NCBI GenBank assembly: GCA_011109175.1
Contig: RDEW01000056.1
Coordinates: 124,001-188,000, forward strand
DNA from: Dicyema japonicum
Lineage: Eukaryota > Animalia > Dicyemida
Direction of reading: 5' to 3'
Length of the DNA stretch: 64,000 nt
Part shown: piece by piece, positions 12,135 through 58,615 of the stretch
How positions within the stretch are numbered: position 1 is the first letter of the stretch
Layout of the letters: each line of letters begins with the position of its first letter
Program-made: the position numbers and the translations under genes
Notes under the pieces: generated by a model
Databases searched by the model: none
Told to the model about the DNA's origin: nothing
The model's input: only the letters and a program-made list of their open reading frames with translations

Positions 12135-13107
12135 TGTCACATGGCCAAGCGATACGTATGGGCTGCCTGTTACATTAACCTTGTACCAAGATTAACTTCA
12201 ATTAATTTTATAAATGATTTATTAACCACAAAAAATTAAATTTAAGTAACTTTATTTAGTCTACTCATTAATACAGTCGATATGTCTCCTTTCAAATTTT
12301 TATCTATCAAATTGAATCTGTTCGCATTCGATATAAATTTTTAAAAAATTGAATCTGTTCGCATTCGGAATTATCTAGATATAAATTTTTTAAATCAAAC
12401 TACGTGAATTTTCAATAGATTTTGGAGTCAAACAATTAACCAAATCGTCAATTTGTTCTGGAATCGCACACTCATCACTTAAATTATCTAAGTCATAATG
12501 TTAAGTATAACCATTAATTATTGAATTTATTCCCTTAATTCTCGATATCTTTCGAAAGGACTTTCGTTAGAAAATAAATGGACCGATATGTTATAACTGT
12601 AGACAGCACTTTCTAATTTATCAAGCCACTTTTTTCACTGTTATCCAGCATTTTGACAACTTTCTCGTGATCGTCTAGGACGCGAAAATTTGCAGACTTC
12701 ACAATTTCGAATGACTTTTCTAATAATCTCATTCTTTACAGTGAAGTATCTTTGTCGACATTCATACTTAATTTTATTGACTCCTCCGTGTGAAAACTCG
12801 TGCAACGATTTCGCACATGCTCCATTTCGGTTTCATTATCCAGGGATATGACTAACTTGGGATCAGTTGATTTAAGATACAGTCTAAAATTATTGCAAAT
12901 TTACAATACCTGTCATTGATAATAGAAAAATTCTCTATCTTCTTTACAAGTCTATATTTTCTGTGCCTCAAAAGATTTTCGGAAATTTATCATGCAAAGC
13001 ATCTTTTAAAGTTTGATATTCAACGCAATCTTTCACAAAACCCTTGTATGAAGCCATTGCAACAAAATAATCTTCCATGCTATAAATCACGGTAGAAATC
13101 TAGGTTT

Positions 13108-16100
13108 TATTTATTATTATTATTTAAAGCACTCCCGAGAAGTCATAAAATTAATCAAGCCTCCCTTGTGCCGTATTTCTAGCCATCCTCTCTATCAGCC
13201 TTTTCCAGGACCCTCTACTTCGTGCCAGTTCCCTTAAGGTATCTAGGTCGTCTGCGGAAGTGAGCTTCAGTCCCACAGCCGACAGGTCTCCATTCAAAAT
13301 AGTTGGGAGTGTGACTCTTGGTCTTCCACGGAAACCGGCTCCCGTATGCATTAAGTAGTTTTCCATGGCGATATTCGCGGGTACTTGAGCATTTAGACGT
13401 AAGATATGTCCAAAGAGACTCCATCTTGATCTGAAGATCTCCTCGGATAGTATACCAGATTTGCACTTCGAGTAGAGGTCATTGTTTGAGATCTTCTTAG
13501 GCCACTTGATCTTGATTACTGATTTCAATTGTGTCCTGTGGAAAGCGTCAAGACGGTCCATCTCTTGTTTAGAGATTCCCCAAGTGCCTGAATTGTAGGT
13601 CAGGACGGGGATGACAAAAGCCTTATATATTCTGAGTTTGGTGTTTAATCCCATCCTCTTCTTATGACCCCACATATTCGATACTTTCTTTAGTGCACAC
13701 ATTGCGAGGATTTTCCTCCGAGAAACATCTTCTGAGTCCCCGAGAAGCGAACCCACCTTCTTTTGCTTTCTCCAAGACTCGTCCGATCTTCGATCATTGC
13801 GTGTAAGTGTTGTGAACTCTGTTTTATCGGTGTTAACGGTTAAGAACCATTTCGAGAATACGTGTGGAAGAACGTTAAGCATGTGTTGAAGTACTTGAAT
13901 ATCCTCAGAAACAAAGTCCAGGTCGTCCGCGTAGATTATCTCGTTATAATTGTTGCCAACCAGGGGTCTGAACTCTCTTAGTGCGGCCTCAAGGTAGACA
14001 ATAAAGAGGACCGGGGATAGTGAGTCCCCCTGTGGAACTCCACGTGAGGTCGAAAAAAAGTTAGAGGTAGAGTCACCAATTTTGACGGCAAGTTGAGTGT
14101 TCCGCATGAGTAAGTGTATTATTTTGACATCGTCAGGCAGTAGAAAACTCTCCAACACTTCCATAAGTTTTCCACGGTCCACCGAGTCGAACGCACGGGA
14201 CATGTCGATACCAAGTATCTCAATAGATTTTTTGTATTTTTGGCACAGGGCACAATACCACCTGTGCCCCCATACCACGTCAGCCGTGGACCTGCCCGTC
14301 CGGAATCCACTTTGGCCGTCCGAAAGAAATATGTTCACCCTCTCCTTTATTCGGTTTAAAGCAATGAGGGATAATGTTTTTCGTATGGAGGTTAGGAGTA
14401 TAATAGGTCTGAAGTTGTGAGGGGGGCCTTTACTTTTTCCCGGTTTTTGTAGTGGAATTAGCCACCCTTTTCCCAGTTCCAGTTCATCTGCACCCTCGAG
14501 AGACCGGTTGAAAATGTTAGTAATCATTTCAATTAGCTCCTCCGGGCCGTATTGTAAAAGTTCTGCAGTAATGAAGTCTGGTCCGGCAGATCTTCCGGTA
14601 TTTAATTTTTTAATAGCTTGTTGAGTTTCGGATATGGTAATAGGGCTAGTTAGAGTGTACTTGTAAGACTTCCGAGATTTCATTGCTTGGTCAGCCGCGT
14701 CCTGTTTGTTGAACATAAGGTCAAAATGGGATGCCAGAACGTTTGCTTTGTTAATGGTCCCGATAACGTCGTGACCAAGGTTGTCATGGACAGTTAACGA
14801 AATTGGACAGTTTTCTCTGCTAAGAAGCCGGATTGCTTTGAACATTCTTGGTCCGTTCTTGTACTTTAATATGTCTGAGATTTTCTCCTCAGCTTCATTT
14901 TTGGCAAGGAATCTTTGTATTTGTTTGATCTTCGTTAAGACTCTCCCTCTCTGGGTGCGCAGTACTTTGATATCTTCCGGAGCGTTTGTGTTTTCCATCC
15001 GGAGTCTGAGCTCTTTCTGTGTTACAGAGAGTTGTCCGATATCCGGATTACATTGTTTGTGACGAGATTTGGTGATGTGACCAAGCACACTAAAGGCTGT
15101 GTTTTGGATAGCAACCACTATTTCATCCCATAAGCTGTTTGTCGGCTGATTTTGGTTAATACTGTTGATGCTATCTCTCAGAACTGCACTATAACGACAT
15201 TTGGTGGATTCTTCGTAGCGTAACCTCTCAGTGTCGAAACGTACTGAGGTAAGGCCTTTGTGTTTCCCGTGTATTCCATGGATTCTTTTAAGTACTAGCC
15301 GGGCGACCACAAGTTTATGATCGCTACTTGTTTCAAGTCCACCGTAAGATCTCGAGTCCTGTAGGAGGGCCTTCTGATGTTGCTTGCAGATAATATAGTC
15401 GATCTGATTGTATATATTGACTGTGTTTCCAGATTTGCCTTTTCTGGTACCAACCCACGTGGTCCTGTGTCTTGCCGGGTGCTTGAAACAAGTGTTGCAT
15501 ATGAGTAGGTTGAATGCCGTGCAAAATTGTATTAATGCCTCTCCGGGGATGTTACGGCGGTTTCTACCGTGGGATCCAATACACGTTTCACCAGGTCTTG
15601 CTTTTCCGGCCCTGGCGTTCCAGTCCCCGGCGATAAAAAGAAAGTAAGAGGATGAAAGTGAGTTGTACACACTTGTGAGAGTAGAGTAAAACGTATCCAG
15701 TTCTTCGATATTCGTTGATACACGTGCTCCGGTTGGGGCATATACGTTTATGATGGAGATCACTGAGTTGAGTTTGTTTCCGCATTTGATTTGTAACACC
15801 GCGACACGGTCAGATACTGCCCATACTCTTGAGACACAGTGAAACAAGTGCCGATGAACAGCAAATCCGAGCCCATAGTGCCTGCAGTCTGGTGTGAGGG
15901 TCAAAAGGTAAAAATTCTTTAACAGTTCTGCAGATTGTTCGGTTATTTTCGTCTCTTGCAAACAACAGACAGAGATGTTGTATTTACTCAGATCACGCGC
16001 CAATTGTTGTTTCTTGTAGCACTGATTGAGGCCTCGGCAGTTGAGGGATCCAAGAGTGAGGGGAGAAACTGGTAAGCAATACGAAGAAGACATAGTGCAA

Positions 16101-16138
16101 GTAGAGGGACGTCACCACCTCAACCAATATTAACCAAT
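13108..16138 (-). mobile_element. Full-length RTE-clade LINE, copy 1 (potentially active)
   Basis: 12-bp TSD AAATCTAGGTTT (13096-13107 and 16139-16150); (TAA)n-like 3' tail; single intact ORF. Confidence 0.95.
13151..16093 (-). CDS. RTE ORF, 980 aa: APE endonuclease plus reverse transcriptase
   Basis: LNCRGL, CLQET, AGDWNA, IDYI, SDH (APE); QSGFR, DMSRAFDSV, GVPQGDSLSP, YADD (RT); RWSLFGHILR and GRPR (RTE C-terminus). Confidence 0.97.
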   Translation of the reverse strand: MSSSYCLPVSPLTLGSLNCRGLNQCYKKQQLARDLSKYNISVCCLQETKITEQSAELLKNFYLLTLTPDCRHYGLGFAVHRHLFHCVSRVWAVSDRVAVLQIKCGNKLNSVISIINVYAPTGARVSTNIEELDTFYSTLTSVYNSLSSSYFLFIAGDWNARAGKARPGETCIGSHGRNRRNIPGEALIQFCTAFNLLICNTCFKHPARHRTTWVGTRKGKSGNTVNIYNQIDYIICKQHQKALLQDSRSYGGLETSSDHKLVVARLVLKRIHGIHGKHKGLTSVRFDTERLRYEESTKCRYSAVLRDSINSINQNQPTNSLWDEIVVAIQNTAFSVLGHITKSRHKQCNPDIGQLSVTQKELRLRMENTNAPEDIKVLRTQRGRVLTKIKQIQRFLAKNEAEEKISDILKYKNGPRMFKAIRLLSRENCPISLTVHDNLGHDVIGTINKANVLASHFDLMFNKQDAADQAMKSRKSYKYTLTSPITISETQQAIKKLNTGRSAGPDFITAELLQYGPEELIEMITNIFNRSLEGADELELGKGWLIPLQKPGKSKGPPHNFRPIILLTSIRKTLSLIALNRIKERVNIFLSDGQSGFRTGRSTADVVWGHRWYCALCQKYKKSIEILGIDMSRAFDSVDRGKLMEVLESFLLPDDVKIIHLLMRNTQLAVKIGDSTSNFFSTSRGVPQGDSLSPVLFIVYLEAALREFRPLVGNNYNEIIYADDLDFVSEDIQVLQHMLNVLPHVFSKWFLTVNTDKTEFTTLTRNDRRSDESWRKQKKVGSLLGDSEDVSRRKILAMCALKKVSNMWGHKKRMGLNTKLRIYKAFVIPVLTYNSGTWGISKQEMDRLDAFHRTQLKSVIKIKWPKKISNNDLYSKCKSGILSEEIFRSRWSLFGHILRLNAQVPANIAMENYLMHTGAGFRGRPRVTLPTILNGDLSAVGLKLTSADDLDTLRELARSRGSWKRLIERMARNTAQGRLD

Positions 16139-16847
16139 AAATCTAGGTTTACCGCTATAAAAATAAAATCTTTATTCATAACATTATGAATAAAACTAAT
16201 TAACAGGTTAAATACGATATAAATCGGATATACAAAATTAAATGTCGGATAATCAAAAGACCTTTTCAAGGTCGAAAAAATGTAACAGGCTGCCATGCGT
16301 TACGCGCCGCCCATGTGACATATTATCCACTTTACACGCTTCTAACAAACGTGAAATCATCTGATCATTGTTACACTTAGTTTTATTTTCTAAATATGGG
16401 TTTATTTGGTGTTTTACTGATTATTTATTAGTTTGCTATTTATAATCAGCTTTAGGATAAATTAATTGTTCATATCATGGGGAATACACAGTTTCTCCGA
16501 ATTTAGTTATCCCAAATACTGAGGTGCATGGATTATTAGTACTGTGGATATTTTATTCTGATTATAAAAAAATTTATCGTCTGCATTTTTTAAATACAAT
16601 CCACCCAATTAAATTAAAATTATTATCGATTCTTCCACTCAGACCTTTCTCTTCTTAGAAGAGGAGCAAATACCAGATAATTCTCCGTTACCTCCTCACC
16701 ACCGTTGTCTAACTGAGTTTTAGTTCAATTAAGTGATTGGTTACTGCAACAAAGTTCTAGATAGTGGATACTTCGTATTTAACTCAGCCAAACATACTCT
16801 CCAACGTTTTTGAAGACGACGGATTAAATTTACGTGAAATTTATAAT

Positions 16848-30525: not shown

Positions 30526-33500
30526 ACCTTTTATTTTTTATTTAAAGCACTCCCGAGAAGTCATAAAATTAATCAAGCCTCCCTTGTGCCGTATTTCTAG
30601 CCATCCTCTCTATCAGCCTCTTCCAGGACCCTCTACTTCGTGCCAGTTCCCTTAAGGTATCTAGGTCGTCTGCGGAAGTGAGCTTCAGTCCCACAGCCGA
30701 CAGGTCTCCATTCAAAATAGTTGGGAGTGTGACTCTTGGTCTTCCACGGAAACCGGCTCCCGTATGCATTAGGTAGTTTTCCATGGCGATATTCGCGGGT
30801 ACTTGAGCATTTAGACGTAAGATATGTCCAAAGAGACTCCATCTTGATCTGAAGATCTCCTCGGATAGTATACCAGATTTGCACTTCGAGTAGAGGTCAT
30901 TGTTTGAGATCTTCTTAGGCCACTTGATCTTGATTACTGATTTCAATTGTGTCCTGTGGAAAGCGTCAAGACGGTCCATCTCTTGTTTAGAGATTCCCCA
31001 AGTGCCTGAATTGTAGGTCAGGACGGGGATGACAAAAGCCTTATATATTCTGAGTTTGGTGTTTAATCCCATCCTCTTCTTATGACCCCACATATTCGAT
31101 ACTTTCTTTAGTGCACACATTGCGAGGATTTTCCTCCGAGAAACATCTTCTGAGTCCCCGAGAAGCGAACCCACCTTCTTTTGCTTTCTCCAAGACTCGT
31201 CCGATCTTCGATCATTGCGTGTAAGTGTTGTGAACTCTGTTTTATCGGTGTTAACGGTTAAGAACCATTTCGAGAATACGTGTGGAAGAACGTTAAGCAT
31301 GTGTTGAAGTACTTGAATATCCTCAGAAACAAAGTCCAGGTCGTCCGCGTAGATTATCTCGTTATAATTGTTGCCAACCAGGGGTCTGAACTCTCTTAGT
31401 GCGGCCTCAAGGTAGACAATAAAGAGGACCGGGGATAGTGAGTCCCCCTGTGGAACTCCACGTGAGGTCGAAAAAAAGTTAGAGGTAGAGTCACCAATTT
31501 TGACGGCAAGTTGAGTGTTCCGCATGAGTAAGTGTATTATTTTGACATCGTCAGGCAGTAGAAAACTCTCCAACACTTCCATAAGTTTTCCACGGTCCAC
31601 CGAGTCGAACGCACGGGACATGTCGATACCAAGTATCTCAATAGATTTTTTGTATTTTTGGCACAGGGCACAATACCACCTGTGCCCCCATACCACGTCA
31701 GCCGTGGACCTGCCCGTCCGGAATCCACTTTGGCCGTCCGAAAGAAATATGTTCACCCTCTCCTTTATTCGGTTTAAAGCAATGAGGGATAATGTTTTTC
31801 GTATGGAGGTTAGGAGTATAATAGGTCTGAAGTTGTGAGGGGGCCTTTACTTTTTCCCGGTTTTTGTAGTGGAATTAGCCACCCTTTTCCCAGTTCCAGT
31901 TCATCTGCACCCTCGAGAGACCGGTTGAAAATGTTAGTAATCATTTCAATTAGCTCCTCCGGGCCGTATTGTAAAAGTTCTGCAGTAATGAAGTCTGGTC
32001 CGGCAGATCTTCCGGTATTTAATTTTTTAATAGCTTGTTGAGTTTCGGATATGGTAATAGGGCTAGTTAGAGTGTACTTGTAAGACTTCCGAGATTTCAT
32101 TGCTTGGTCAGCCGCGTCCTGTTTGTTGAACATAAGGTCAAAATGGGATGCCAGAACGTTTGCTTTGTTAATGGTCCCGATAACGTCGTGACCAAGGTTG
32201 TCATGGACAGTTAACGAAATTGGACAGTTTTCTCTGCTAAGAAGCCGGATTGCTTTGAACATTCTTGGTCCGTTCTTGTACTTTAATATGTCTGAGATTT
32301 TCTCCTCAGCTTCATTTTTGGCAAGGAATCTTTGTATTTGTTTGATCTTCGTTAAGACTCTCCCTCTCTGGGTGCGCAGTACTTTGATATCTTCCGGAGC
32401 GTTTGTGTTTTCCATCCGGAGTCTGAGCTCTTTCTGTGTTACAGAGAGTTGTCCGATATCCGGATTACATTGTTTGTGACGAGATTTGGTGATGTGACCA
32501 AGCACACTAAAGGCTGTGTTTTGGATAGCAACCACTATTTCATCCCATAAGCTGTTTGTCGGCTGATTTTGGTTAATACTGTTGATGCTATCTCTCAGAA
32601 CTGCACTATAACGACATTTGGTGGATTCTTCGTAGCGTAACCTCTCAGTGTCGAAACGTACTGAGGTAAGGCCTTTGTGTTTCCCGTGTATTCCATGGAT
32701 TCTTTTAAGTACTAGCCGGGCGACCACAAGTTTATGATCGCTACTTGTTTCAAGTCCACCGTAAGATCTCGAGTCCTGTAGGAGGGCCTTCTGATGTTGC
32801 TTGCAGATAATATAGTCGATCTGATTGTATATATTGACTGTGTTTCCAGATTTGCCTTTTCTGGTACCAACCCACGTGGTCCTGTGTCTTGCCGGGTGCT
32901 TGAAACAAGTGTTGCATATGAGTAGGTTGAATGCCGTGCAAAATTGTATTAATGCCTCTCCGGGGATGTTACGGCGGTTTCTACCGTGGGATCCAATACA
33001 CGTTTCACCAGGTCTTGCTTTTCCGGCCCTGGCGTTCCAGTCCCCGGCGATAAAAAGAAAGTAAGAGGATGAAAGTGAGTTGTACACACTTGTGAGAGTA
33101 GAGTAAAACGTATCCAGTTCTTCGATATTCGTTGATACACGTGCTCCGGTTGGGGCATATACATTTATGATGGAGATCACTGAGTTGAGTTTGTTTCCGC
33201 ATTTGATTTGTAACACCGCGACACGGTCAGATACTGCCCATACTCTTGAGACACAGTGAAACAAGTGCCGATGAACAGCAAATCCGAGCCCATAGTGCCT
33301 GCAGTCTGGTGTGAGGGTCAAAAGGTAAAAATTCTGAAACAGTTCTGCAGATTGTTCGGTTATTTTCGTCTCTTGCAAACAACAGACAGAGATGTTGTAT
33401 TTACTCAGATCACGCGCCAATTGTTGTTTCTTGTAGCACTGATTGAGGCCTCGGCAGTTGAGGGATCCAAGAGTGAGGGGAGAAACTGGTAAGCAATACG

Positions 33501-33544
33501 AAGAAGACATAGTGCAAGTAGAGGGACGTCACCACCTCAACCAA
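30526..33544 (-). mobile_element. Full-length RTE LINE, copy 2, near-identical to copy 1; ORF 30569-33510 broken by one missing G
   Basis: G5 at 31839-31843 versus G6 at 14421-14426; only a handful of other substitutions; no clear TSD. Confidence 0.95.
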
Positions 33545-33642
33545 AAAAAAAATAAATTATGTTTATTAAAATAAATGTAAACTAATATATAAAAATAAAC
33601 AATATTTAGAAATAAGAGGGAATATTTAAAAATTGTCTTGTT

Positions 33643-54982: not shown

Positions 54983-57900
54983 TGTCACATGGGCCAAGCG
55001 ATACCTATGGGCTGCCTGTTAGATTAACCTTGAACCAAGATTAACTTGAATTAATTTTATAAATAATTTATTAACCACAAAAAATTAAATTTAAGTAATT
55101 TTTTTAGTCTACTCATTAATACAGTCGATATTTCTCCTTTCGAATTTTTTATCTATCAAATTAAACTATTTAAAACTACCTCCACGCGATTATTCGATAA
55201 AACATTAATTATTTCTGCTACTGGATAATACTGAGACTCAAACTTATACAGTCGCAATGAGGGATTTGTTCCAAAGTCTTTTTTAGCCCAAACCTATTTA
55301 TTTATTATTATAAGCAACTACATAGAATCATATAAACTATAATTCTATTCGTTCCGCGTCTGAACAATCCTCTTAATTAGCTTTTCCCATCCCCTCCTGT
55401 CCGATGCCAAGTGCCGCAGACTACCAAGGTCTTCACCGTCCTTTAGTAGTCTGGTTACTGATCTCAGGTCACCATTAAGGACTTCCAGAAGAATTATTCT
55501 TGGACGACCTCTGAACTTCTCCCCTGACGTATCGAAGTATTCTTCTATGACGACGTTTGCTGGCGTGTCTTGTTCTAATCTGAGAATATGGCCAAACAAT
55601 CTCCAGCGAGCCTTCATGATCATGGTGCTCAGAGGTCCGGAACCGCATCTTCTATATAAATTTTCACTCCCTACACGCATTGGCCACTTTAGTCCCAAGA
55701 GAGATCGAAGTTTCCTTCTGTGAAAGGAGTCAAGGTTTTGTTCGTCCGTTTTCGAAATTCCCCACGTCCCAGAGTTGTATGTTAGTATGGGCTTCACGAA
55801 CGCCTTATACAACCTGATTTGGAGTGATGGCCCGACCGAGCATTTTCTTATCCAACATTTCATAAGTTTTTGCATAGTAACCGTAGATAACAATTTTCTT
55901 CTTGCAATGTCTTCGGAGTCTCCGAGAAGAGAGCCAAGCTTTACGGTCTTCCTCCAACATTCACTATTGCGTAGTTCAATCCACTTAATTTCAACAATAT
56001 CCGTTTTCTGAACATTCAGTGATAGACATCATTTGGCCAAACAGCCTGATGCAACCTCCAAGAGACGTAAGAGTGCTTCTTTGTCAGTCGAGATAAAGTC
56101 AACATCATCGGCATACACGATCTCCATAATATCATTGTTGTAATACTTCCGGAGGTCTTGCAGAGCCGATTCAAGGTATATAGCAAACAATACTGGGGAA
56201 AGGGAATCTCCTTGGGGTGTGCCCACTGTTGAAATAATTTCCCGTGACAAACATTTTCCAATACGCACTCGTAACCTCGTGTTTGATAAGAGTATCCGTA
56301 TCAGAATAACCGAGTCCTTATCCAGGAAACTTTCAAGCACTTCAATGAGTTTTCCCCGACGGACAGTGTCGAAAGCTCTGGTCAGATCAATTCCAAGGAT
56401 AGTCTTTGAGCTCCGGAATCTTTGTTGAATAGCACATTGCCATCTATGGCACCATACTACATCAGCCGTTGATCTCCCTGTCCTAAAACCACTCTGGCTC
56501 TGGGCCAAGTACCCGTCCACCGGCTCTTGGATCCGATTAAGAGTAATTAGGGCAAGGATCTTCCTTAAGGTGTTTAGAAGGATGACAGGGCGCAGGTTTT
56601 CAACTGGCCCAGGGGGTTTATTACCTTTTTGAACTGGTACTAGTATCCCCTTTCCAATTTCTGAAAAGTCCTTGTTTTCTATCATGTCATTCAGCAATTT
56701 TGAGAGTTTATCTGCAAGTTCTGGAGGGCCAAATTTTAGCAATTCAGATGGTATATTATCTGGTCCTGGAGAGCGCCCAGATTTAAGTTTCCTTATCGCC
56801 ATGCAAACCTCCTCCGGTGAAATGATCCGTTCAAGTGTTGTGTTCTTAGGCGTGAAATCTGATTTTTCTCCTTTTACAAAGAACAGTTGTTCAATATGCG
56901 ATGCTATGAACTCTGTCTGTTCTGCAACATTTCCTATTGTTTTTCCATTTCTGTCATGCAAAATAAGTTTCACTGATTGGCTCTTCCTCCGTATTAGTCG
57001 TATAGCCATGAATGTCGCAGCATTGTCTTTAAGGTTTTCTACCTCTCTGATCTTGCTTTCCAACTGACTAGTGTGATGTAGTCTGTTTAGGAGTTTGATT
57101 TTTCTCTCAATTTGCCTTCGTTCTTGTTTCAGTTTGCAAACAGTCTGAGGATCGACAGTATTTTCGGATCTAAGCCTTAAGTTCTTCTGCAAATTCAATA
57201 GGGCTGACACTTCCGGGTGACGCTGACTGCTATGGGGTTTAAGTTCCCCCAAATGTTTGTCAGCAGCGGAAATGATCCCTCTCATAGTTTCGAGCCATGC
57301 CTTTCCTGGTGAAAGATCCGATGCCGTATTATTAATTGAATCCGATACACATTCTTTATAGTCTGCTTGTACTTTTGGTGAAGAGCCCAAGAGTTCAGTC
57401 ATATACCTTCTTGATCGCGTGGAATCTCCACCACGATGTGTTTGGAAGAAGCATCTTCTATTAGTTATCCCGTAGAGGAACTCCTCCGCAGTTGGACCAA
57501 GTCTTAAGCTGAATCTTGCTGACACAATTTTGTGATCACTGTTAACAGTTAGTCCTCCATAAGATCTCGAGTCCCGTAAGAGAGATTTGTCTTTTACTCG
57601 ACACAGAATATAATCGATCTGATTATAAATCCTTATCAGATTTCCGGTGGTCGATAGTCTAGTGCCCATCCACGTTGTCTTGTGGCGTGCGGAATGTTGG
57701 AATTGAGTATTGCACAGGAATAAATCAAAGGATTCGCAGAAATATGCCAGAGCAGTACCAGAATAGTTCCTGATCCCCCTTCCATCTGGTCCAATAAAAC
57801 GTTCGTGTCCTTGATGTACCCCAGCTTTAGCATTCCAATCACCAGCGATAAAGAGGAACGTTGAAAACTTCAGAGAAGATACGACCCCGACAAGTTCTTT

Positions 57901-58615
57901 GTAGAAAACGTCCAATTCCTCTGGGTTTTTGGAAACACGGCCACTATGTGGGGCGTACACGTTCACAATGGAAATTAGTTGCCTGGACTTCCTTTTGGGT
58001 CCAATATGAAATTGAATAACATATATCCTGTCATCAATTTTCCAATATCGATGTAATCTGGGGAGCAAATTCTTGTGAACAGCGAAACCCTGTCCATAGT
58101 TTTTATTGTACGATGGAAGGAGGATTAGTCTGTATTCTCCAAGGTTTTCATCGAGTCCTTTTCTGAGCTTCGTCTCTTGGAGACAGCAAACAGAGCATCC
58201 ATATTTTGCAAGGTCCAGACATAGTTGGTGCCTCTTTGATCAGTCATTAAAACCCCTGGCATTGAAGGTAAGGGTAGAAAACCAGAAAGGATTATTCAAA
58301 TACGTATTAGACATATGTGCTATAGAGGGACGTCACCACCTCAACCAAAATATCACCACCTCAACCAAACCTATTTATTAATGTTTTTAATTCATACTTT
58401 ATCTCCCATGTTAAAAGTATATTTACTATATGAACATTCATTTTCCTCTTCATAGCTTTTTAATAATTAGAATTTTCTTCAATCGATTTAATTTCGAAAT
58501 TGAATCTCTTATCTGACTGAGAATTATCTAGATATAAATTTTTTAAATCAAACTACGTGAATTTTCAATAAATTCTGGAGTCGAACAATTAACCAAATCG
58601 TTAATTTGTTCTGGA
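54983..58615 (-). mobile_element. Second Ginger copy (one TIR, truncated) with a nested RTE
   Basis: 54983-55165 matches 12135-12315; 58500-58615 matches 12350-12460. Confidence 0.8.
55303..58364 (-). mobile_element. Full-length RTE LINE of a divergent family; ORF ~55345-58314 with stops and frameshifts
   Basis: TSD CCAAACCTATTTATT (55288-55302 and 58365-58379); APE and RT motifs in ORFs 56029-58068 and 55345-55893. Confidence 0.92.

Follow-up and report, generated by a model that had tools for sequence, protein, structure and literature searches.

A conserved 26-nucleotide leader at the 5′ ends of divergent RTE retrotransposons in Dicyema japonicum: a candidate compact cis signal encoded by the elements

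The stretch of DNA analysed here, referred to below as the window, covers 64,000 nt of Dicyema japonicum sequence (assembly GCA_011109175.1, contig RDEW01000056.1, positions 124,001-188,000 of the forward strand). It contains three RTE retrotransposons, all on the minus strand, and each of them opens with the same 26-mer, the leader. Exact matches number three in the window and zero in 100 dinucleotide-preserving shuffles. In all three copies 8 nt separate the leader from the ATG, and the DNA upstream of it is different and unrelated from one copy to the next. An earlier note on this DNA had described the elements as beginning in this way, and its coordinates and spacing were confirmed.

The first copy, assigned to family A, is the most complete of the three. 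Its leader (16102-16127, minus strand) is an exact match, forms the first 26 nt of the element and has an unrelated upstream flank. The remainder of the 34-nt 5′ UTR is CTTGCACT (16094-16101, minus strand), which is semi-conserved, its GCAC being common to families. An intact ORF of 980 aa follows (13151-16093, minus strand; from the ORF list), with AP-endonuclease and reverse transcriptase domains (Pfam Exo_endo_phos and RVT_1). The exact ORF was sought in the contig collection and was not on record. The short 3′ UTR (~45 nt; 13108-13150, minus strand) ends in an A-rich tail of TAA repeats, and its 3′ end motif is found 71 times in the genome. The element is bounded by a clean 12-nt target site duplication (TSD), AAACCTAGATTT, with its 5′ copy at 16139-16150 and its 3′ copy at 13096-13107 (both minus strand). 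This duplication encloses the leader, which bears out the claim that the leader lies between duplications. Between the 5′ copy of the TSD and the leader there are 11 additional nt that partially repeat the leader start, TTGGTT (16128-16138, minus strand). With a single ORF and AP-endonuclease and RVT_1 domains the element is an RTE-clade non-LTR retrotransposon, and further RTE-clade traits are present: the 34-nt 5′ UTR, the ~45-nt 3′ UTR with its TAA-repeat tail and the 12-nt duplication. A T-rich stretch also lies ~10 nt upstream of the TSD (16151-16170). It is a single case that recalls the RTE insertion signature described elsewhere (PMC6007223).

The second copy also belongs to family A. 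Its leader (33519-33544, minus strand) is an exact match with a run of 8 T immediately upstream (33545-33552), and its ORF (30569-33510, minus strand) is in two pieces, 31810-33510 and 30569-31756, as judged from the ORF list and protein comparison. The third leader (58323-58348, minus strand), again exact, heads a family B element with an interrupted ORF remnant (56029-58314, minus strand; ORF list and protein comparison). A partial second copy of leader positions 1-16 lies 4 nt upstream of this full leader (58353-58368, minus strand). This partial copy resembles a scar of template switching and probably falls within the target site duplication. Amino-acid identity is 99-100% between the elements at 16 kb and 33 kb, which belong to a single family, and 45% between these and the element at 58 kb. 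The earlier assignment of the 58 kb element to another family with a diverged protein is upheld.

How far does the leader extend beyond the window? The earlier note had proposed a genome search with the 26-mer, and this was carried out on the 67.5 Mb Dicyema japonicum assembly of 377 pieces (published assembly: PMC6736024). Allowing up to 2 mismatches, the 26-mer has 191 genomic matches and the reversed control pattern has 0. About 100 of the leader places, together with related ones, were read individually. All but three of these copies head an RTE-type element, with ATGTCT and an RTE N-terminus 7-10 nt downstream. Their upstream flanks are mutually unrelated and the sequence downstream represents many RTE families; 69 distinct sampled 5′ ends fall into 29 clusters at 80% identity. 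An anchor that is independent of the leader gives the same picture. The start of the family A ORF, CTTGCACTATGTC, was used to search the genome, and the leader precedes 29 of its 29 matches, one of them truncated within the leader. Full-length copies thus regularly begin with the leader. In the genome, 71 3′ ends and ~30 5′ ends of family A were counted, so ~40% of its copies appear to be full length. This is a high share for a LINE. In practical terms, the motif can serve as a marker for full-length RTE 5′ ends in the Dicyema japonicum genome.

Some individual places deserve description. Three orphan leaders or leader starts (L034/L053, L071, and L081) are followed by non-RTE sequence. At L053:5300-6096 (G000 C2:1325299-1326095, minus strand) an orphan leader with 1 mismatch precedes ~260 nt of unique non-RTE sequence, after which comes a ~920-bp repeat with 652 candidates at a first look through the genome, its aligned copies being 96-98% identical. 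L007, L099, and L100 (all G000) are short, internally deleted RTE derivatives that retain ~150-300 nt of the 5′ end, leader included, and ~100-130 nt of the 3′ end. L067 and L082 have common flanks and are segmental duplicates rather than independent insertions.

One suggested origin of the leader is capture from the host: an RNA of the host, whether a trans-spliced leader or a small RNA's end, would have been copied onto RTE cDNAs. The length of ~25 nt and the short gap to the ATG are like those of spliced leaders, trans-splicing is known from flatworms, to which dicyemids are related, and the orphans place a leader before non-RTE sequence. However, apart from these 3 orphans the ~100 copies read are all RTE 5′ ends, and the 12-mer gives about as many orphans as the reversed-pattern control, which gives 11. 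The distance from leader to ATG is constant. Leader variants go with particular families and occur in multiple copies, and heritable variants of this kind argue against a single host donor RNA. In addition, an RTE from an unrelated marine metagenome (L197, see below) has a similar motif. A host gene for the leader was also sought, because the note had pointed to a leader followed by GT as the mark of one. Genome-wide, the leader core with GT within 0-3 nt has 2 matches: 1 is an RTE copy and 1 lacks the 5′ half of the leader, a chance partial match. A genome search for each leader half without the other turned up nothing but RTE variants, scars at junctions and a small number of orphans, and text searches returned no paper with the motif and none reporting a dicyemid spliced leader. 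With no leader-plus-GT gene copy, no convincing non-RTE context, inherited variants and a similar motif in a foreign RTE, capture of a host leader is very improbable. What is left to it is the slight chance of a donor gene in an unassembled, perhaps tandem, gene array. The tempting inference that dicyemids possess a spliced leader with the sequence of this leader is thereby removed as wrong.

The leader is far more conserved than the elements that carry it. Family A proteins are ~43-45% identical to those of family B, ~41% to those of C, 55% to those of D and 40% to those of E. In codon alignments the third codon positions of different families are 34-35% identical, which is near saturation, whereas 25-26 of the 26 leader positions are identical. 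This combination indicates strong constraint on the leader, which sits at the terminus, descends vertically with the elements and has its primary sequence maintained by strong purifying selection. Two observations had been named in advance as ones that would speak against such a reading. One was drift of the motif at the rate of synonymous sites, and the figures above show the opposite. The other was that the 58 kb element might be a recent recombinant. This element is not a one-off: the leader is present throughout its own family, B, in which at least 10 copies have an identical junction, and in at least five further divergent families. Conservation also does not stop right after the 26-mer, as had been thought from the three window copies, because GCAC and ATGTCT recur in most families.

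With the first 12 or the first 16 nt of the leader as anchor, variant searches recover further RTE families, several of which have 2-4 identical copies. Multi-copy variants keep positions 1-12 (the first 12-16 nt), the TGACG core, CTCT, TTGCAC and the ATG. Positions 13-21 vary among variant families, with loops that include GATGACGACG, GTTGACGAC, and GTGGCGTG. Accordingly, the TGACGTC core to which attention had been drawn is not conserved as a whole; only its TGACG half is retained in most family variants. The changes T11C and C20G are each common to several families. Leader variants are family-specific and inherited vertically with the elements. Many of the old families are single decayed copies, and some of their “variants” may reflect post-insertion decay, such as loss of the CpG in GACGTC. 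At leader positions 17-18 the CpG of GACGTC is often TG or CA in old copies, which would fit CpG decay of the methylation type. We also considered whether positions 1-16 had been added separately as a module, with breaks concentrated between positions 16 and 17, and rejected this as an effect of ascertainment: the search anchored on 12 nt finds many variants, breaks elsewhere and orphans at control level.

What if identity of the leader reflects exchange rather than selection? Reverse transcriptase might switch templates among co-expressed RTE families and homogenise their 5′ tips, so that the likeness is one of concerted evolution. The 5′ junctions contain traces that bear on this. Position -1 relative to the leader is T in 56 of 67 flanks (84%; loci L001-L091 in G000) compared with 38% background T, and a variable run of 0-8 T lies directly upstream of the leader. 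Partial leader repeats sit between the TSD and the leader at 16128-16138, at 58353-58368 and in L018. We would interpret both the T runs and the partial repeats as junction scars, left by untemplated A addition and by template switching of the reverse transcriptase at the RNA's 5′ end. The repeats indicate that switching onto leader sequence does occur, and L072 has a 19-nt copy of its own flank within the leader. Another clue is that the leader of family A matches those of the distant families B to E exactly, whereas its nearest relative, family J, has a different loop. The greater likeness of A to B-E than to J could come from exchange of 5′ tips rather than from selection alone.

Nevertheless, several features do not fit. 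When the switch happens at the RNA 5′ end, the first leader stays in place and a second is added upstream of it. Many families retain multi-copy variants of their own, positions 1-12 are retained even in old, divergent families, and the junction with family-specific sequence is always within a few nt of the ATG. Exchange alone also leaves the retention of TTGCAC and ATGTCT unexplained. Through template switching, tip exchange may account for part of the exact identity seen among families A to E, which are young, but it cannot explain the whole pattern. As the main cause of that pattern it appears improbable to us.

The leader, then, is very probably a constrained cis element that belongs to the retrotransposon itself. 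At what level does it act? One answer is that it works in the RNA, as a 5′-terminal recognition or processing element. This could take two forms. In the first, a small hairpin with a GAGG/CCTC stem and a GTGACG loop would be bound by the protein of the element, securing full-length cDNA and 5′ joining. In the second, a new and very small motif that is self-cleaving or cleaved by the host would free the RNA from read-through transcripts. There are precedents among 5′ ribozymes, namely the twister variant of Perere-3, which is of the RTE clade (PMC8501958), and the HDV-like ribozyme of R2 (PMC3774820). The 5′ ends of the Dicyema elements are precise in every copy, as such an activity would make them.

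However, the leader of Dicyema itself gives little sign of a fold. The earlier note had proposed that GAGG and CCTC pair. Pairing is possible, but the 34-nt UTR is no more stable than its shuffled versions (z = +0.1 to +0.6), and the stem has no covariation within Dicyema. Minimum-free-energy folds of the first 40 and 140 nt from 15 families have no common structure. Rfam 15 at gathering scores gave no ribozyme match in the window, and Rfam with E-values up to 5 gave 0 matches in 20 Dicyema 5′ ends. We agree with the note that ~34 nt is too short for an HDV-like ribozyme, and the same is true of the twister, hatchet, and pistol folds, with nothing past ATGTCT conserved. Membership of a known ribozyme family is excluded. 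Two candidates were tried and rejected. The leader could not be threaded by hand onto an HDV-like fold, since its loop does not leave enough room for P2 and P3, and its complementarity to the family A codons CTCAAC is not kept by other families.

Foreign RTEs provide another line of evidence. The public RTE proteins closest to the Dicyema element are 40-45% identical to it and come from contigs of ~3 kb with a single ORF of ~1000 aa. Among these loci is L197, which comes from a marine metagenome. Upstream of its ORF there is a motif that has TTGGTTG at its start and includes GGTAACG and CCCT; the alignment of this motif to the Dicyema leader has a Smith-Waterman score of 27, a value reached by 0 of 2000 control windows. 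This match alone argues that the motif predates the radiation of RTEs in Dicyema. The motif of L197 is also in L112, and their stem differs from that of Dicyema at one position with pairing kept (A:U versus G:C). Aligned singly to the leader, L112, L114, and L195 are not significant (p = 0.1-0.3).

A more distant group of arthropod-type RTEs, with ~25% protein identity, is represented by many contigs from soil and termite-gut metagenomes and has a hairpin in its 5′ UTR (L130, L132, L135, L140, L141, L159, L163, L168, L171, L172, L184, and others). This hairpin consists of TTGGGC, a 6-bp stem, a 7-nt loop of CTAACAA or GTGACGA and the returning stem, and is followed by CCCGTAAAAAA. Four of its pairs have both sides changed, and 95.8% of cells are paired compared with ~57% in slid controls. 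It sits in a conserved 5′ UTR of more than 150 nt. No Rfam family matches it, and a search of 12 foreign RTE loci with Rfam at E-value thresholds gave nothing relevant. A covariance model built from the hairpin finds 6 additional members. L133, labelled as human gut metagenome, was left out of all analyses.

In having TTGG, two bases, a stem and a TRAC-containing loop, the arthropod-type hairpin has a suggestive likeness to the Dicyema leader. This likeness may serve as a lead only, because reciprocal covariance models gave no link. Foreign motifs were not recovered by the model of Dicyema leaders, nor Dicyema leaders by the model of foreign hairpins. Should the motifs be homologous, the position of the foreign RTE motif in a hairpin loop, with a covarying stem in one group, would favour a role at the level of RNA. 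Taken together, an RNA-level signal at the 5′ terminus, which the foreign hairpins favour, is the main competitor of the reading preferred below, possible but not likely. A bolder version would have a new minimal RNA-processing module in a deep RTE branch that spans animal phyla, consisting of TTGG and then a hairpin with a GTRACG loop, cleaved or recognised at its first base, with Dicyema having the minimal form in which the module is the whole 5′ UTR. This we regard as distinctly unlikely.

The alternative that we prefer is a signal read at the level of DNA. Conservation of primary sequence without a thermodynamic signal fits a motif recognised in DNA or by protein better than it fits a folded RNA. 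The constraint is strongest at the terminal 12-16 nt, the TGACG half-site lies at a fixed distance and structural signal is absent, and these three observations point towards a promoter. The leader also has what an internal promoter would be expected to have. It is at the extreme 5′ end, within the duplications, in every full-length copy, and more constrained than neutral sites. The second suggestion of the earlier note, that a strongly selected internal promoter or processing signal of compact size is at work, therefore fits (25-26 of 26 leader positions versus 34-35% of third positions; 29 of 29 ORF starts). There are also points against a promoter. The start is unlike the Inr or DPE consensus, as judged by eye, and TGACGTC is not conserved as a full palindrome. 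RNA processing, too, can produce precise 5′ ends. A reading of the leader as a Pol III A box was rejected, because a B box is missing and the 3-kb transcript contains T runs.

The 26-mer opens a 34-nt 5′ UTR that is found throughout this RTE lineage and encoded by the elements. On balance it is somewhat probable that it has a promoter-type function. That the function is specifically that of a minimal internal promoter or initiator is a more tentative proposal, and its chances are at best about even. The leader is copied with every full-length reverse transcript and passed on vertically within families, and purifying selection has retained it during divergence of the proteins to 40-55% identity. 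Acting as a minimal Pol II promoter or initiator downstream of the start, with its invariant first 12-16 nt and a TGACG half-CRE 14-18 nt in, it would have transcription begin at the first base of the element. Each new copy would thereby bring its own start signal.

To our knowledge, it is still unclear how RTE elements, which are nearly without UTRs, are transcribed and set their 5′ ends. Text searches on 5′ signals of the RTE clade found only 5′ ribozymes. Many RTE families that have otherwise reached saturation keep a single sequence of 26-34 nt at their first base, which makes it a compact candidate for such a cis signal.

How does the leader compare with known systems? Spliced leaders, such as SL1 of nematodes and the SL of flatworms, resemble it in being an identical 5′ leader of 22-36 nt near the start codon. 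They differ in that no SL RNA gene and no unrelated recipients were found in Dicyema, where variants are heritable within families. Internal promoters of other non-LTR elements are closer in concept. Drosophila jockey, I, F, and Doc have an Inr and a downstream element within ~+1 to +40, and human L1 has a YY1 box. As the leader is proposed to do, these promoters act downstream of the start, within the first tens of nt, through a position-dependent motif of primary sequence that is retrotransposed along with the element. However, no resemblance of the leader to the Inr, DPE, or YY1 consensus was seen, and the Dicyema promoter is putative. We also know of no report that these promoters are common to families as divergent as those considered here.

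Self-cleaving RNAs are the other class of 5′-terminal elements. In 2011 Ruminski and colleagues reportedly described HDV-like ribozymes at the 5′ ends of non-LTR elements, including RTE, and one is located at the 5′ end of R2 (PMC3774820). They share with the leader a precise 5′ end of a non-LTR RNA, just upstream of the ORF. In contrast to the leader, which is without such a fold, covariation or a model match, they need a nested double pseudoknot of ~60 nt or more. The element Perere-3 of Schistosoma mansoni, a member of the RTE clade, has a T-variant of the twister ribozyme at its 5′ end and 0-7 A beside the TSD (PMC8501958). Here the likeness is greater: an RTE-clade element of a spiralian parasite, a conserved 5′-terminal element adjoining the TSD, and a variable homopolymer at the junction. 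The differences are that the Dicyema leader is without the twister core (P2-P4, >50 nt) and without an Rfam match, that the nucleotide at the junction is T and not A, and that the UTR is just 34 nt.

Finally, the Pr77 hallmark of the trypanosomatid L1Tc/ingi/NARTc/SIDER retroposons is a 77-nt sequence for which experiments have established both Pol II promoter and HDV-like ribozyme activity (PMC1874656, PMC3185411, PMC4748587). Like the leader, it is short, is carried within the element at the extreme 5′ end, is common to different retroposon families of one genome and is far more conserved than the rest. The Dicyema motif, at 26-34 nt, differs from both Pr77 and Perere-3. It is unrelated to them in sequence, much shorter, given that 34 nt is the entire UTR, and has no recognisable ribozyme fold. 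By analogy, Pr77 may be considered its closest counterpart in logic and the twister variant of Perere-3 its closest counterpart in phylogeny. The leader takes its place with them among the conserved 5′-terminal cis elements of non-LTR retrotransposons.
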